A DNA stretch of 63,401 nucleotides, filler included, from Octopus bimaculoides (lineage: Eukaryota): NCBI RefSeq assembly GCF_001194135.2. It is 4 parts of 4 records of this genome, joined end to end, with 100 filler letters (N's around TTAATTAATTAA, not from the genome) between each part and the next. Parts side by side here need not be neighbours in the genome. Positions count along the whole stretch, not along the records: positions 46,761 to 62,205 come from NC_069004.1; 3 more parts are not named here. The stretch is one strand, 5' to 3'. The number at the start of each line of letters is the position of its first letter. The stretch's first letter is position 1. The notes beneath the pieces are model-generated. The model saw nothing but the letters and a program-made list of their open reading frames with translations. It did no database searches and was not told the origin of the DNA. Shown piece by piece: positions 47,657-62,205 of this stretch. The position numbers and the translations under genes are program-made.

Positions 47657-49191
47657 NNNNNNNNNNNNNNNNNNNNNNNNNNNNNNNNNNNNNNNNNNNN
47701 NNNNNNNNNNNNNNNNNNNNNNNNNNNNNNNNNNNNNNNNNNNNNNNNNNNNNNNNNNNNNNNNNNNNNNNNNNNNNNNNNNNNNNNNNNNNNNNNNNNN
47801 NNNNNNNNNNNNNNNNNNNNNNNNNNNNNNNNNNNNNNNNNNNNNNNNNNNNNNNNNNNNNNNNNNNNNNNNNNNNNNNNNNNNNNNNNNNNNNNNNNNN
47901 NNNNNNNNNNNNNNNNNNNNNNNNNNNNNNNNNNNNNNNNNNNNNNNNNNNNNNNNNNNNNNNNNNNNNNNNNNNNNNNNNNNNNNNNNNNNNNNNNNNN
48001 NNNNNNNNNNNNNNNNNNNNNNNNNNNNNNNNNNNNNNNNNNNNNNNNNNNNNNNNNNNNNNNNNNNNNNNNNNNNNNNNNNNNNNNNNNNNNNNNNNNN
48101 NNNNNNNNNNNNNNNNNNNNNNNNNNNNNNNNNNNNNNNNNNNNNNNNNNNNNNNNNNNNNNNNNNNNNNNNNNNNNNNNNNNNNNNNNNNNNNNNNNNN
48201 NNNNNNNNNNNNNNNNNNNNNNNNNNNNNNNNNNNNNNNNNNNNNNNNNNNNNNNNNNNNNNNNNNNNNNNNNNNNNNNNNNNNNNNNNNNNNNNNNNNN
48301 NNNNNNNNNTATATATATATGGAACAAAAACGCAATATAGGGCATTAAAACGTTTGGACAGATAGACTACACAATGGTGGAAAGAGAAACAACAATTAGA
48401 AGGACAGGCAAACAAAGACGGTGCATTCTTGGCTTTCTTTCATCAGTCAAGTAGCAGAAGTCACGACTATTTCGGACAGATATATATATATATATATAAG
48501 CGTCCACCAGTTCGGCTTTCTGTACAGATTTCATGTAAATTTTCCAGTATTCTATTCATGACGTGTTAGTCAACCGGACGCAACAACAGAAAGCAAACGT
48601 CCGAACCATTCCGCGGGGTAATCGATCCCGAAACCCCGCTGTTACGAACTGCTGTTGTTAACCACACAACGATTTCAGAGACTTTTTTTACTCGCGTTTT
48701 TTTTCTTTTATCATTGTTTCTCCGTGTGTAGGTGGAGAGCAAGCCCTTTTTAATGGACTCTGTCCAATGTGGTCGATACATCGATAACATGTAATCGTTT
48801 CGGAGATTTCTTAGTGGCTATCAATTCTTTGTCAGTTTGATGAAAAGATCTGGATTTTACCATTAGTGGAAACGTAATTTTTGTCTTATTTTGATGCCTT
48901 TTATTCATTTTTGTTTATTTTTTGTTGATTTTTGTTGTTGTTGTTGTCATCACCTTTCGTAGGACCATTTGTCGCGTTTACTTCTAATAAACAGGGGTGT
49001 GCAGAAAACAACTTGCACTGTAAGTTCAAAGTGTGTGTACACTCACACACACACACACGTATACGTATACATGCAATTAATGCATTTATACGTATATATA
49101 CACGCATGTATGTAAGCTCACACACAGAAATGTATGTATAAATATATATGTATATACACCATTGCAAATACATACGTATATATATACATTT

Positions 49192-51204: not shown

Positions 51205-51902
51205 NNNNNNNNNNNNNNNNNNNNNNNNNNNNNNNNNNNNNNNNNNNNNNNNNNNNNNNNNNNNNNNNNNNNNNNNNNNNNNNNNNNNNNNNNNNNNNNN
51301 NNNNNNNNNNNNNNNNNNNNNNNNNNNNNNNNNNNNNNNNNNNNNNNNNNNNNNNNNNNNNNNNNNNNNNNNNNNNNNNNNNNNNNNNNNNNNNNNNNNN
51401 NNNNNNNNNNNNNNNNNNNNNNNNNNNNNNNNNNNNNNNNNNNNNNNNNNNNNNNNNNNNNNNNNNNNNNNNNNNNNNNNNNNNNNNNNNNNNNNNNNNN
51501 NNNNNNNNNNNNNNNNNNNNNNNNNNNNNNNNNNNNNNNNNNNNNNNNNNNNNNNNNNNNNNNNNNNNNNNNNNNNNNNNNNNNNNNNNNNNNNNNNNNN
51601 NNNNNNNNNNNNNNNNNNNNNNNNNNNNNNNNNNNNNNNNNNNNNNNNNNNNNNNNNNNNNNNNNNNNNNNNNNNNNNNNNNNNNNNNNNNNNNNNNNNN
51701 NNNNNNNNNNNNNNNNNNNNNNNNNNNNNNNNNNNNNNNNNNNNNNNNNNNNNNNNNNNNNNNNNNNNNNNNNNNNNNNNNNNNNNNGTGTGTGTGTGTG
51801 TATACATATACATATATATATATATATTTATATATACATACACATATATATGCGTGTGTGTGACTATGGGTGTGGAAAGAGTGAGAAACAATGAGAGGGA
51901 GA

Positions 51903-56058: not shown

Positions 56059-59000
56059 GAGAGAGAGAGAGAGAGCAACAAGTTATAAAGAGGAAGGAAT
56101 ATGGGACGGAGTGAGAATGAGGGTAGGGAGAGGAACATAAATCGAAACAAAGAAGTTGAAAGCAAAATATAGGGCATTGTGTGTGTTGTTGGTTAAGAAG
56201 CTCGCTTTGCAACCACGTAGTTTCGGGTTCATTTCCCCTGCGCGGCATCCAATGGACAGGTGTCTTCAGGCTGACTAATGCGTGTGAATGAATTTGATAG
56301 AAGTAAATCGTGTGGAGGCCCGATCGATATATATATATATATAAACGCCGGTGTTAAAACGGGGGTAGCTGATGAAGGAAAATGTTCTCTATGTGGCTTG
56401 TGTGTTTTCTGTACTCTGGTTATTATTATTTTCTTGTCTACGTTTTGTTTGCAATGTCCTGTACCCAGATATGCACCTATATATACAGGTAGACGTAGGT
56501 ATACACATACCTGTACGTATATATGCATATACTCATTTATTATTTGTTTTATATATATATATATATATATATNNNNNNNNNNNNNNNNNNNNNNNNNNNN
56601 NNNNNNNNNNNNNNNNNNNNNNNNNNNNNNNNNNNNNNNNNNNNNNNNNNNNNNNNNNNNNNNNNNNNNNNNNNNNNNNNNNNNNNNNNNNNNNNNNNNN
56701 NNNNNNNNNNNNNNNNNNNNNNNNNNNNNNNNNNNNNNNNNNNNNNNNNNNNNNNNNNNNNNNNNNNNNNNNNNNNNNNNNNNNNNNNNNNNNNNNNNNN
56801 NNNNNNNNNNNNNNNNNNNNNNNNNNNNNNNNNNNNNNNNNNNNNNNNNNNNNNNNNNNNNNNNNNNNNNNNNNNNNNNNNNNNNNNNNNNNNNNNNNNN
56901 NNNNNNNNNNNNNNNNNNNNNNNNNNNNNNNNNNNNNNNNNNNNNNNNNNNNNNNNNNNNNNNNNNNNNNNNNNNNNNNNNNNNNNNNNNNNNNNNNNNN
57001 NNNNNNNNNNNNNNNNNNNNNNNNNNNNNNNNNNNNNNNNNNNNNNNNNNNNNNNNNNNNNNNNNNNNNNNNNNNNNNNNNNNNNNNNNNNNNNNNNNNN
57101 NNNNNNNNNNNNNNNNNNNNNNNNNNNNNNNNNNNNNNNNNNNNNNNNNNNNNNNNNNNNNNNNNNNNNNNNNNNNNNNNNNNTGATATTTTTTTATACA
57201 AATAACTGGTGTTTATTTTAAGGGTTCTTCAAGTTAACCCCGGCACGATTTCAGACTTGAACGTGAAACTTCGCAACTAAATATCACAAAATATTTTGTC
57301 CAGTTTTCTGCCGATTTTGCCGATGCAATGATAATCTTGTCTGACTTAAAGTTCGTTAGTTTCTTTTTGAATGTCTTGCCTTTGTGTCATCTCTGTATAA
57401 TATAAATTACCCTCCCCTCTCTCTCTCTCTCTCTCTCTCTCGCTCTTTTTACTCTTCATTTGTTCCTCTCTTTGCCTTTCTTTCTTTTCCTTCTTCTCCT
57501 CCCCCTCCTCACTCTTGTTTAACGCGCCAGGTCATTAAATATTCGGGAGTCGAAGGAAGGAGATCTAGCGAAGATAACATTGTTATGGATGGAGGCTATC
57601 TATAAATGTAACAGTAGCTGTGGTTGATTTACGAACCCTATCTACCTTTATCGCCACCCCTGCCACCCCCTCGCATTTCACAAACTTTGTTCTCTCTTCT
57701 ACGATCATCATCGTGATCCTCATCACAATCTAATCATCATCGTCGTCGTCGTTGTCACCACCATCACCCCCCCACCCCCATCATCCTTATCTTCGCCATA
57801 TGGACTCCGAAGGGTTCCATATAAGATTTTGCTAAGATTCATCTGCGATAAACTGGTTGTACCTCTACAAAATATTTTAATTTTCTTAAATACAATTCCT
57901 ATAATATTTAATTATACAAATATAATAATAGTTTTTTTTAAGCATTGAATGACTATGAGAATCCACCCATGTAAAATAGGAATTAAAGGGGTCCATTGGC
58001 AAAAAATGGTTGAGTACTAATGATTTACATGTAACCTGTTTAACAAAGTTGTTTTTATAAAGTTAGTCGGGCAAGGAAAGCGACTATAATTTTCTTAGGG
58101 CTCAAAATATTGAACGTGACACCAACATGAAGTTATTCATATTCTCGGCGCCCGAATCTTTCGAGCCTCAAAAGTCATTGATGGGTTTCAAGTTTTGATA
58201 ACTTCCTTAACTTTACAAAGAAATACTTGAAATGTTAATGCAATGTAAAGGACATAATGGAAATTAATATGCAGAAGTCAACTTCTGCAACACCACAACA
58301 TCGCATATGAAAAATGACATCGTAAATGCTCATGCCGCAAGAGAAACAATACAGTTGCTACGGTAAGTGCTTTGGAGAGAGAATAATCACCAGATACGCA
58401 ATGTCAACTGGTTTTCACGTTCCCCAGACTTGAATAGTCCGGATTTTCCTTGTGAAGATACCTGAAAGAGGGGGGGGATTACATCAATGACTTTTGGGAC
58501 ACTCTGTAGATAGGCGCAGTCGTGGCCGTGTGGTAAGGAGTTTGCTTCAAAACCACATGGTTTCAGGTTCAGTCTCGCTGCATGGCAGTGAGAACTGCTC
58601 ATATCCCACGTAAAATACTGTTTATGTAATCCCAAATTTTAAAACAAGCTTATAAATTTTTTTAATGTTTTCTTAAACGTTCTCTACAACAATACTTTGT
58701 ACAAAACCAAATATATGGCACCCTCGTCGTAAGACAAACTTGTACAAATACAAAGCATAAGTCAAACATGTAATAATAATAATAATAATAATAATAACAA
58801 CAACAAAAACAACAATAACAATAATGATAATAAAATTTAGAACTTGATATTGAAAATAATGAAGTTTATGAAAACCAGAAACATACATATAAAGAGATTT
58901 CACACACACTCACACCAAATCGCACATACATACTGACTGACATGTGCACACGATATGTCGATTAACAAAATTTTACACACTACATTGAATATACACAAAA

Positions 59001-59510
59001 CTACATACACACATTCACCTACACACACACACACACACATTATTTCTCTTTCTTTCTTTCTCTCTCTCTCTCTCTCTCTCTCACACCCATACATACCTAC
59101 ATTATTCGAAATTTCTTAAAACTATTTCATTCCTAGAAAGTGTACCTGTAGTTCAACAAAGTAAAAAATATCCGTTTGTAATTGGTGTAATATATATCCG
59201 ATGAGAATAATTCAGTATGATTGTAGTTTAATGCATTTTTGAAATATTTTTGACTGTGGAACTTCAAAAGCAATTCCTGGTCGAGAAAATCTTATGTTCT
59301 GAAACCTTAAATCTATGGTTTATGCAACGGCAGCCAGGATAACTTTACAGTTACTTTGCAACTGTGTATCCAAAAATTAAGTTCTAAATTATAACACAAC
59401 ACACATACATATATGTATGTATATATTATGTATGTATGTACGTATGTATGTACGTATGTATGTACGTATGCATGTATGTACGTATACATGTATGTACGTA
59501 TGCATGAATG

Positions 59511-59544
<34 letters not shown>

Positions 59545-59801
59545 TAGATAGATATCTCATTGGAATATAAAATTGACCGTAAATTTTGATTTAAAGTGAA
59601 AGCTTTCTTGTAATTGTGTGTGAATATGTGTGTGCGTGCACGCGTATGTGTGTATGCCTTTATGTGTACGTGTGCGTGCGTGCGTATATATATGTGTGAG
59701 TGTCTGTACGTGTATGTGTAAGAGCGTGTGCATGTGATGTGTGTGCATGTGTGTGTAAGCGTGAGAATGATGCGGCGAGTGGTGAGAGTGAAACAAAAGG
59801 A

Positions 59802-60794
59802 TCAAGCTTCAACACATTCGCAGCAAAGTGTCACTGAACGTTCCTTGAAAACCCAGAGATGTTCATAGTGTGAGTTCGACTGATCACTGACTGGAACTGG
59901 CACACAAGAGTTTGATTTCCGCACCAAAACCTTAACTCGAGATGATTTCGCTTGGCATCGGTAATGATCGAACCAGCAGCGTTTGCTCAAACAACGAACA
60001 CTTCGAATGTACTGCGGGAAATAGTTGTTCCCCAGGTCACGCCACGTATGACGACTTGTACATTGCCAAGGTAATCTTCTCTGTTCATTGCTTTTCCTTC
60101 GCTTTGCTCGGCTTTCTGGCGATTTTCTAAGACGATCTGTAAATCTTTTGACGATATCAGGGTTTGTCGTTTTCTTTGTCCTTCGCTGTTGCAGTATTTC
60201 CAATGACCTTACAGCCCCATCATCATCCTTTTCATTACTATCATCGTGGTTGTAGCTGAGGTAGTCGCCGCCGTCGTTGTCCTCATTATCATCATGATCA
60301 TTTTTACTATAAATTTCCAAAGGTTCGTTCGCCAACTCAGCAAAAACCTGTCGTTGATCTGGATGATCTGTCCGAATGCCACTCGTGTTCTTAGCAGTCT
60401 TATTTGACGTGTCAACGGGTGGCTTCACCGACATGTAGCTTAGGTTTAAGGTGGTTCCGAGCCTTGAAAGAAGTGCTGCTACAGAAACAGGTTGGCAGGT
60501 ATACTTCACAAAAGAAAACCTATTCTCAAAGTTAGGTAAGTCAGTAAAATCCGGTTTCCTCTCGCCCTTCATCACATCAAATGTACCCGAGACATGGCTA
60601 CCATTCATTAAGAGGGGTTTGAAACCGAATTCCTGTTTAAAATTACTTCCTCGATCGTTAGGGTTTTTCAATGACATTTTCTTAAAATCCAATGTAGAAA
60701 AACATGTGAACAGCAAGACAGAAATATACACCCAGCGTGTATTAAGCAGGGACATATCGTTAAATTTGTAGGCAGTATCCTTCATTTTTACCAT
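59802..60794 (-). CDS. trk: Trunk-like secreted cystine-knot growth factor (Trunk/PTTH family, noggin-related); single coding exon, 330 aa from the first ATG or 317 aa from the ATG at 60755
   Basis: Uninterrupted non-repetitive ORF. Hydrophobic signal-peptide-like start ([21 protein letters not shown]). N-terminal motif [23 protein letters not shown] resembles the Trunk/noggin C..LG..FN.RYMS motif. Basic cleavage site RAKRR at 60096-60110. C-terminal domain with 8 Cys, PWQC....W.DLG.NYFP.YIRSV.C....CW..HY.C..KS..VKVL.RK..SC...[15 protein letters not shown], matches the Trunk consensus as I recall it. Four N-glycosylation sequons (NGS, NLS, NKT, NTS). The upstream part of the listed 613-aa ORF is microsatellite and N-gap read-through. 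Confidence 0.92.
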
Positions 60795-60867
60795 ACATGC
60801 ATTCACACACACGTACACACACACAACTCTCCCATATATGTATATATATATATACACACACTCACAC

Positions 60868-60902
<35 letters not shown>

Positions 60903-60940
60903 TGTATATATGTACGTATGCATGTATCTATATGTCCGTG

Positions 60941-60987
<47 letters not shown>

Positions 60988-61002
60988 GTGTATATATATA
61001 TA

Positions 61003-61055
<53 letters not shown>

Positions 61056-61857
61056 NNNNNNNNNNNNNNNNNNNNNNNNNNNNNNNNNNNNNNNNNNNNN
61101 NNNNNNNNNNNNNNNNNNNNNNNNNNNNNNNNNNNNNNNNNNNNNNNNNNNNNNNNNNNNNNNNNNNNNNNNNNNNNNNNNNNNNNNNNNNNNNNNNNNN
61201 NNNNNNNNNNNNNNNNNNNNNNNNNNNNNNNNNNNNNNNNNNNNNNNNNNNNNNNNNNNNNNNNNNNNNNNNNNNNNNNNNNNNNNNNNNNNNNNNNNNN
61301 NNNNNNNNNNNNNNNNNNNNNNNNNNNNNNNNNNNNNNNNNNNNNNNNNNNNNNNNNNNNNNNNNNNNNNNNNNNNNNNNNNNNNNNNNNNNNNNNNNNN
61401 NNNNNNNNNNNNNNNNNNNNNNNNNNNNNNNNNNNNNNNNNNNNNNNNNNNNNNNNNNNNNNNNNNNNNNNNNNNNNNNNNNNNNNNNNNNNNNNNNNNN
61501 NNNNNNNNNNNNNNNNNNNNNNNNNNNNNNNNNNNNNNNNNNNNNNCGCACTGACATACCAACATACGCAAATGGACCCGCATAAAAAAAATTTCCCAGT
61601 CTATTTCCATAGGCGCGCATACGAGCGTGTATCTCTCTATCAATCTACCTCTCTCTCTCTCTTTTCGTCTTCCTCTTTCTCTCTCTCTCCCTTGCTCCGT
61701 CTATTTCTTTATATATGTATATATATATATATATATATATACATACACATATATATATAAATATACACACACACACTCACACACACACACACACATCCAT
61801 ACAGACATACTTACACACACACATATATGTATGCATACATATATATANNNNNNNNNN

Positions 61858-61897
<40 letters not shown>

Positions 61898-62154
61898 AGA
61901 GAGAGTGTTGTATGTAATTGTGTGTGTATCTATATATATAGCTACATAGATGTATACATATATGCACATATATATATATATATATACAAGCACACATATA
62001 TATGGATGTATTAAATATATGAATATAAATATTAATATATTTAAAGTTATGTCTATATATAGTTATATATATGTATGTACATAAATATATACATATATAT
62101 ATATACATACATACATATAATTATATATATATGTACATGTACATATACAAATAA

Positions 62155-62205
<51 letters not shown>

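Follow-up and report, generated by a model that had tools for sequence, protein, structure and literature searches.

Within the 63,401-nt stretch of Octopus bimaculoides DNA analysed here (the window), positions 59802-60794 of the minus strand hold a complete gene that is almost certainly an orthologue of insect Trunk, of the type termed Trunk-proper below, and under purifying selection. The best explanation as a whole, which we hold to be probable, is that this gene encodes a Trunk-proper precursor that is processed by furin and acts as a ligand of a Torso-type receptor tyrosine kinase (RTK). A preliminary description, made from the sequence alone, had proposed an intact Trunk-like gene of the Torso-ligand family in a cephalopod-type genome and had listed a complete open reading frame (ORF), a signal-like N-terminus, a conserved motif, an RAKRR site and a domain with eight cysteines. 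All of these elements are present, the similarity searches described below support the family call, and the source of the ORF is the chromosome-scale contig CM046624.1 of O. bimaculoides (assembly GCA_001194135.2). The background given there, with Trunk and PTTH as Torso ligands and kin of noggin, agrees with the literature (PMC6660194, PMC9071555). The features of the gene are the following, with the evidence for each in brackets (pLDDT, predicted local distance difference test of the AlphaFold2 model; dN/dS, ratio of nonsynonymous to synonymous substitution rates).

59802-60794, minus strand: complete Trunk coding sequence (CDS), single exon, 330 codons plus TGA (ORF and translation)
60693-60794, minus strand: signal-peptide-like N-terminus, residues 1-34 (sequence, AlphaFold2 helix 15-33)
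60417-60512, minus strand: Trunk-type pro-region motif, residues 95-126 (alignment, pLDDT, dN/dS)
60219-60317, minus strand: acidic low-complexity linker rich in D, E and N, approximately residues 160-192 (sequence, pLDDT below 50)
60096-60110, minus strand: furin/proprotein-convertase consensus R229-A-K-R232, then R233 (pattern, alignment)
59805-60074, minus strand: C-terminal cystine-knot domain, residues 241-330, LPWQC...CCECVEA (alignment, AlphaFold2, Foldseek, Pfam)
59940-59942, minus strand: codon 285, Ser, in an AFTVKVL context elsewhere (alignment)
59826-59828, minus strand: codon 323, Leu, the residue before CC, in a VTFCCEC context elsewhere (alignment)
59802-59804, minus strand: stop codon TGA (translation)

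Family assignment of the octopus Trunk gene

A phmmer scan of 1.84 billion representative proteins returned 348 hits at E <1e-3, the top 33 of which were all classified as Trunk-type by profile. The hits include the Drosophila Trunk cluster with D. yakuba, D. simulans and D. erecta (E 2.4e-25, 106 bits), a Lingula 'protein trunk-like' (E 3e-26), a Priapulus 'trunk-like' and a Chrysoperla 'protein trunk', and the UniRef name of the Octopus vulgaris orthologue is already 'Protein trunk'. A profile search of a word-indexed database of 5.8 billion proteins, with an alignment of relatives as query, yielded 3 proteins and added no information. The alignment of the octopus protein to Drosophila Trunk runs over the full length, through both the pro-region motif and the knot. 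It is mainly this full-length similarity, together with the motif, that places the protein in Trunk-proper; the tree agrees, weakly.

For a finer assignment, we used as references the labelled Trunk, PTTH and Noggin sequences published by de Oliveira et al. 2019 (supplement of PMC6660194), among which three spiralian groups were recognised: group A or Trunk-proper, which includes the fly and beetle Trunk; group B, with a W..M..GYFP.Y.QTG knot, the element RCNP.P..G.NTTYEE and a basic tail; and group C, short, PTTH-like or Noggin-like proteins ending in GCxC. The octopus protein scored 180 bits on the Trunk-proper profile, 141 on that of group B, 85 on that of group C, 45 on PTTH and 21 on Noggin, and in a leave-one-out control with the Trunk-proper and group B references every reference was assigned to its own group. 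BLASTP gave 85-125 bits against group A, 62-107 against group B, 37-72 against group C, 23-44 against PTTH and 33-35 against Noggin. In a neighbour-joining tree (90-column knot alignment, Kimura-corrected distance, 200 bootstraps), the sequences of the two octopus species fell inside group A, beside a protein that we refer to as P0003, with 64% support, and group B was monophyletic without octopus Trunk in 178 of 200 bootstraps (89%). The Noggins formed a clade of their own in 200/200 bootstraps; a grouping of the octopus protein with Noggin, which the preliminary description had named as the outcome that would speak against a Trunk identity, was not seen. Outside octopus, P0003 (285 aa, 47% identical) is the nearest relative; it is encoded on contig 21999 of the Logan set for SRR8281693 (L003, 1328 nt; gene 345-1202). 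It and near-identical variants occur on several 1-1.7-kb contigs of public sequencing runs, and it may stem from transcribed RNA of a different cephalopod or mollusc.

In Pfam, Noggin alone exceeded its cut-off (PF05806; 26.8 vs 24.1 bits), matched over profile positions 84-183 of 211. As the same model also passes for 91 of 120 Trunk-family relatives, it reports the core of the superfamily and not Noggin orthology. Human Noggin was the only significant sequence match in the PDB (E 0.0019). We rejected a Noggin orthologue on the missing clip, the wrong cysteine pattern and the profile score of 21 bits, and a PTTH orthologue on the PTTH profile score (45 bits), the BLASTP scores of 23-44 bits, the differing cysteine pattern and the presence of the Trunk motif.

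Anatomy and predicted fold of the precursor

The N-terminus of octopus Trunk consists of a charged n-region followed by a hydrophobic core, W21-F32, and its relatives likewise start with comparable hydrophobic N-termini in the alignment. From this sequence we infer, by a heuristic call, a secretory signal peptide and its cleavage point; alternative start methionines are M1, M4 and M14.

The pro-region motif reads C100-x7-L-x4-G-x3-N-x2-YMS-x3-P in octopus. Its residues C100, L108, G113, N117, Y120, S122 and P126 show no variation among the 15 relatives in the alignment, of which Drosophila Trunk is one, and C100 and L108 are at least 90% conserved among 120 family sequences. The octopus version is partly degenerate, with TTLNLS vs PAFNxR in relatives. 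The conserved motif that the preliminary description had pointed out is thus present, but it is not exclusive to Trunk: a motif of the form LGxxF(N/D)PxFMS occurs in Noggins too (LGSNFDPNFMSV in Xenopus noggin2), so the motif as such marks the superfamily, and the Trunk-type version is C...LG.AFN.RYMS...P. The high model confidence of this segment points to a joint structure with the knot.

Cys100 (codon 100, 60495-60497, minus strand) is a ninth cysteine, unpaired-looking beside the eight of the knot and located in a segment modelled at a pLDDT of ~95. It might form an interchain disulfide, or one from pro-region to knot, that would outlast furin cleavage.

The acidic linker is poorly conserved and predicted to be disordered. 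Downstream of it, the pattern [RK]x[RK]R matches octopus Trunk just once, at RAKR 229-232, a site that lies 12 residues ahead of the first knot cysteine; a dibasic RR follows at 239-240. The RAKR site is kept in O. vulgaris, and most relatives have aligned basic sites, for instance RRRR, KRS, SKRG and KKRS, with an RxxR consensus at this place over the 120 sequences. A pre-knot basic site like that of octopus is also found in Tribolium (HRSKRG) and in many spiralian Trunks.

The last 86 residues of octopus Trunk contain eight cysteines (245, 268, 273, 280, 297, 324, 325 and 327), ending in CCxC, and these match Trunk column for column. Residues invariant relative to Drosophila Trunk are W243, C245, W251, L254, G255, F259, P260, R264, C268, C273, C280, L290, R292, C297, W314, E318, C324, C325 and C327. 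The knot domain is presumed to be the mature, receptor-binding ligand.

In an AlphaFold2 model built with the 120-sequence alignment (mean pLDDT 69.8), residues ~95-130 reached 89-96 and residues 241-330 reached 87-98, with low values in the N-terminal region and the acidic linker, and the knot came out as four long beta-strands. Among PDB structures, Foldseek ranked highest 1m4u_A (Noggin with BMP-7; E 2e-4) and 5aoq_L/M (Bombyx PTTH with the Torso ectodomain; E 7e-4 and 1.4e-3), the latter with template modelling (TM) scores of 0.69 and 0.63, normalised to PTTH. The IL-17 and PDGF cystine knots ranked next. Membership in the IL-17 family, for which there were a weak Pfam match (E 0.14) and these Foldseek matches, was rejected, the likeness being one of shared cystine-knot fold only.

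Conservation and selection between two octopus species

The O. vulgaris genome (OX597837.1, ~31.78 Mb; L001:9779-10777) encodes a full 332-aa precursor with signal peptide in the same frame, from the MVKMKD start to the CCECVEA end, with 87% amino-acid identity to the O. bimaculoides protein. Only two indels separate the two sequences, both of one codon and in frame, after residue 189 in the acidic linker and after residue 206 downstream of it. The NCBI model for O. vulgaris (P0002, 258 aa; named 'Hypothetical predicted protein' and in UniRef 'Protein trunk') begins at the internal Met75; since the genomic frame continues upstream of this codon, the public model is N-terminally truncated. The loci of the two species are collinear over ~20 kb, and the locus is therefore older than the species split.

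Nucleotide identity between the two octopods is ~91.5% in the CDS vs 74-89% in the flanks. By the Nei-Gojobori method, dS is 0.22 and dN 0.059, giving a dN/dS of 0.27 overall; by region, the ratio falls from 0.45 in residues 1-90 to 0.26 (0.255) in the motif, 0.25 in the linker and 0.155 in the knot. The excess of synonymous changes is significant both over the whole CDS (Fisher p 1.2e-8) and in the knot (9e-5); the ratio near 1 among octopods that the preliminary description had named among the outcomes that would speak against its reading was not observed. All eight knot cysteines and C100 are kept in both species, and derived changes at conserved columns are balanced, with 3 in O. bimaculoides vs 2 in O. 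vulgaris. A chance ORF was rejected on the conservation in O. vulgaris and the dN/dS ratio.

Comparison with known relatives and a second octopus paralogue

Octopus Trunk has the same architecture as Drosophila Trunk (trk; FBpp0079667), Tribolium TC004893, Lingula XP_013416660.1 and the Trunks of Priapulus and Branchiostoma: a signal peptide, a pro-region with C...L...LG.(A)FN.RYMS...P, a variable linker and an eight-cysteine knot of the pattern PWxC...DLG..YFP.Y(L/I)R.V.C....CW..H..C......VKVL.RK...C......W...E..V.(F)CCEC. Over the knot it is 44% identical to the fly protein. It differs from fly Trunk in being ~100 residues longer, owing to an extended N-terminal region and the acidic D/E/N linker, and in a motif that is degenerate relative to the LGxAFNxRYMS of Trunks. 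It also has no equivalent of the fly cleavage site K75/R76, carrying RAKR just before the knot instead, as do Tribolium and many lophotrochozoans. The biological context differs as well, as octopus is without insect-type terminal patterning.

The published cephalopod 'PTTH/Trunk' sequences (O. vulgaris 40845 and Idiosepius 126128; de Oliveira et al. 2019) belong to group B. An O. bimaculoides protein, P0062 (UniRef A0A0L8ICN3), contains a stretch that matches the O. vulgaris 40845 fragment at 100% identity, and it clusters with XP_052831940.1 (LOC106874022). The records of this paralogue, P0062 and P0295, are 434-443 aa long and labelled 'TGF-beta family profile domain-containing protein' or 'uncharacterized'. 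With this group B gene and the Trunk-proper gene, octopus has at least two members of the family. The group B protein belongs to the same superfamily, has an eight-cysteine knot ending in CCxC and carries a related motif, C.P....L...MG..FD..RMA. However, its gene lies on another chromosome-scale contig (37.7 Mb vs 36.2 Mb), its knot is only 35-42% identical to that of octopus Trunk, and it shows the diagnostic features of its group, namely W..M..GYFP.Y.QTG.C, RCNP.P..G.NTTYEE and the basic C-terminal tail. Judged by sequence, the octopus orthologue of insect Trunk is the gene at 59802-60794 and not the group B paralogue. This gene is absent from the 2019 ligand files examined, even though that study screened the O. 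bimaculoides proteome too.

Insect PTTH (Bombyx NP_001037349; 5AOQ) has the same cystine-knot fold (TM 0.63-0.69), a precursor processed at basic sites and, in insects, the same receptor as Trunk. Unlike octopus Trunk, it has seven cysteines ending in (G/A)CxC and no Trunk pro-region motif, and it has been reported as an insect innovation (PMC6660194). Noggin (human NOG, 1M4U/7AG0; PF05806) is a remote homologue which shares the knot core WxDLG..(F/W)PR(Y/F)(I/V)(K/R) with octopus Trunk but has a CxCxC C-terminus and another cysteine spacing, in contrast to CCECVEA in octopus. No BMP-binding clip was found in octopus residues 35-95, where there is no sequence like PSxxLPxxDLxExPDP and the N-terminal alignment to the Noggin profile scored -0.2 bits.

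Trunk outside arthropods is on record for non-moulting molluscs, annelids, brachiopods and even ctenophores, according to Jekely 2013 as cited in PMC6660194 and to PMC6425005 and PMC8398477, and for the oyster there are four Trunk/PTTH-like precursors with published expression profiles (PMC8398477). The occurrence of a Trunk-like gene outside arthropods, to which the preliminary description had drawn attention, holds for this mollusc, but the surprise is smaller than was implied, since such genes had already been published. What is new is modest: cephalopods hold a Trunk-proper orthologue besides the published group B paralogue, a complete 330-aa gene model is defined, and purifying selection is seen between two octopus species. 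Trunk is thus under purifying selection in an animal that has neither moulting nor fly-like embryo patterning. Octopus Trunk adds a cephalopod data point to the established view that Trunk/Torso signalling predates arthropods, and it leaves current understanding standing while correcting the truncated O. vulgaris gene model.

Possible mode of action and alternative readings

In Drosophila, Trunk is cleaved intracellularly by furins and its C-terminal knot is the Torso-binding part (PMC4640135), and both Trunk and PTTH activate Torso and the MAPK pathway (PMC9071555). The clip-less aphid Noggin-like protein ApNL2 replaces Trunk and rescues trk-mutant flies (PMC9071555). In octopus, the 330-aa precursor would enter the secretory pathway via its N-terminal signal sequence and would be cut by a furin-type convertase after RAKR232, and perhaps also at RR240, to release a C-terminal cystine-knot domain of ~90-98 residues, probably as a dimer. 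By analogy with Drosophila Trunk and insect PTTH, this ligand would then activate a Torso-type RTK and the Ras/ERK pathway. That octopus Trunk acts on a Torso-type RTK is, in our estimate, slightly more probable than the opposite.

Several observations weigh against this reading or against parts of it. On the group B profile, octopus Trunk with its 141 bits outscores every Trunk-proper reference; a monophyletic Trunk-proper that includes octopus received 28% bootstrap support over the 90 columns, and in 10% of replicates the two octopus sequences and group B made up one clade. Between residue 126 and the aligned 'EPLEIY' segment, neither octopus has a dibasic counterpart of the Drosophila K75/R76 furin site, which lies directly after the N-terminal motif and is critical in the fly (PMC4640135). 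Several other lophotrochozoan Trunks carry RR, RRR or RHRKR at the aligned place; the K75/R76 site is a fly-defined and not a family-wide feature. Phe stands at residues 285 and 323 in O. vulgaris and in all 13 other aligned relatives, but O. bimaculoides shows F285S and F323L, and these two could be real lineage-specific changes, signs of relaxed constraint or assembly errors. A transcript-derived copy of octopus Trunk was not found in a 15-billion-protein collection, in which it was represented by the two genome assemblies only. As to the receptor, Torso orthologues are listed for the molluscs Leptochiton, Patinopecten, Biomphalaria and Laevipilina (PMC6660194 supplement), but the published Torso files hold no cephalopod, though cephalopods were screened and are present in other receptor sets of that study. 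Our own search used the Leptochiton Torso kinase fragment as query and covered the best 120 of 444 matches, all to proteins of <300 aa. It retrieved Torso-type kinases of Lottia, Branchiostoma and insects, and from O. bimaculoides solely P0193, a 246-aa fragment from a 35.5-Mb contig named 'tyrosine-protein kinase receptor Tie-1'. In a kinase tree P0193 groups with Nucella and Pomacea proteins near Ret-like kinases and not with mollusc Torso or vertebrate Tie, and its database name is probably misleading. An octopus Torso was thus not found in this search, in which a full-length Torso could not have appeared, and in the literature we found no cephalopod Torso and no functional work on cephalopod Trunk.

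The receptor results would suit a true Trunk-family ligand in cephalopods without Torso, working through another receptor or in a lineage-specific role. Purifying selection shows that octopus Trunk does something, no cephalopod Torso was recovered by our search or occurs in the published set, and PTTH is reported to act on G protein-coupled receptors in work cited in PMC9071555. However, our search was confined to short proteins, the 2019 screen relied on a fragmentary gene set, the first for O. bimaculoides, and misses Trunk in its ligand files too, and Torso co-occurs with Trunk in other mollusc classes, and we regard this reading as unlikely. It is quite unlikely, in our view, that cephalopods keep a constrained Trunk and a second paralogue but lost Torso, so that the ligand either serves another receptor or has reverted to, or retained, a role as Noggin-like extracellular modulator; if true, an ancient ligand-receptor pair would have been uncoupled.

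An antagonist role of the Noggin type, in which octopus Trunk binds BMP/activin-type ligands in the extracellular space and activates no RTK, draws on the fact that Noggin provides the only Pfam family above cut-off, the only significant PDB sequence match and the top Foldseek match, and on the resemblance of the pro-region motif to the LGxxFDPxFMS of Noggin. In addition, the aphid protein ApNL1 inhibits BMP even when its clip is removed from it, and several functions may be ancestral to the superfamily (PMC9071555). Against this stand the Pfam match itself, which leaves the BMP-binding clip unmatched, and the lack of any clip-like sequence upstream of the motif, along with the profile scores (21 bits vs 180 for Trunk), the CCxC instead of CxCxC end and the separate Noggin clade in every bootstrap. 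Furthermore, Drosophila Trunk antagonises BMP in Xenopus only once a clip has been grafted onto it (PMC9071555). We therefore consider such an antagonist improbable. There is very little to recommend the idea of a decaying or unexpressed relic, an intronless and perhaps retroposed copy that no longer has a function in O. bimaculoides. The single exon amid microsatellites and assembly gaps, the lack of a transcript-derived copy in the protein collection and the two substitutions F285S and F323L would fit it, but the 330-codon frame is open in two species at a dS of 0.22 with both indels in frame, the dN/dS ratio is low overall and lowest in the knot, the collinear locus predates the split, derived changes are balanced, and the eight knot cysteines and C100 are kept.

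The gene in its genomic surroundings

The Trunk ORF, translated on the minus strand from 60794 to 59802, contains neither internal stops nor N. It equals an existing gene call on CM046624.1, from which it differs solely in the start codon chosen, and the chance of a 330-codon open frame is ~1e-7 per start. In the 15.4-kb piece of the window that comes from this contig, the Trunk CDS is the sole long ORF not derived from translation of microsatellites or N runs, and scans with Rfam and for tRNAs and tandem repeats found no RNA genes and no other genes in the piece, only microsatellites. The (TA)n, (CA/TG)n and TATG microsatellites and the assembly gaps surround the gene at 59412-59800, 60797-61056 and 61630-62205; runs of N lie nearby at 61057 to ~61560 and elsewhere at ~47660-48310, ~51210-51780 and ~56580-57180.

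A 613-aa ORF at 59802-61643 is the Trunk CDS artificially lengthened across a gap. Two antisense ORFs inside the CDS, at 60451-60771 (plus strand, 106 aa) and 59942-60130 (plus strand, 62 aa), are unsupported and were rejected as genes; a long ORF is expected to bring such frames with it on its opposite strand. The repeats and gaps around the gene yield many spurious ORFs rich in Y, I, C, V, H and T, such as those at 59557-59805 on the minus strand and 60797-61585 on the plus strand.

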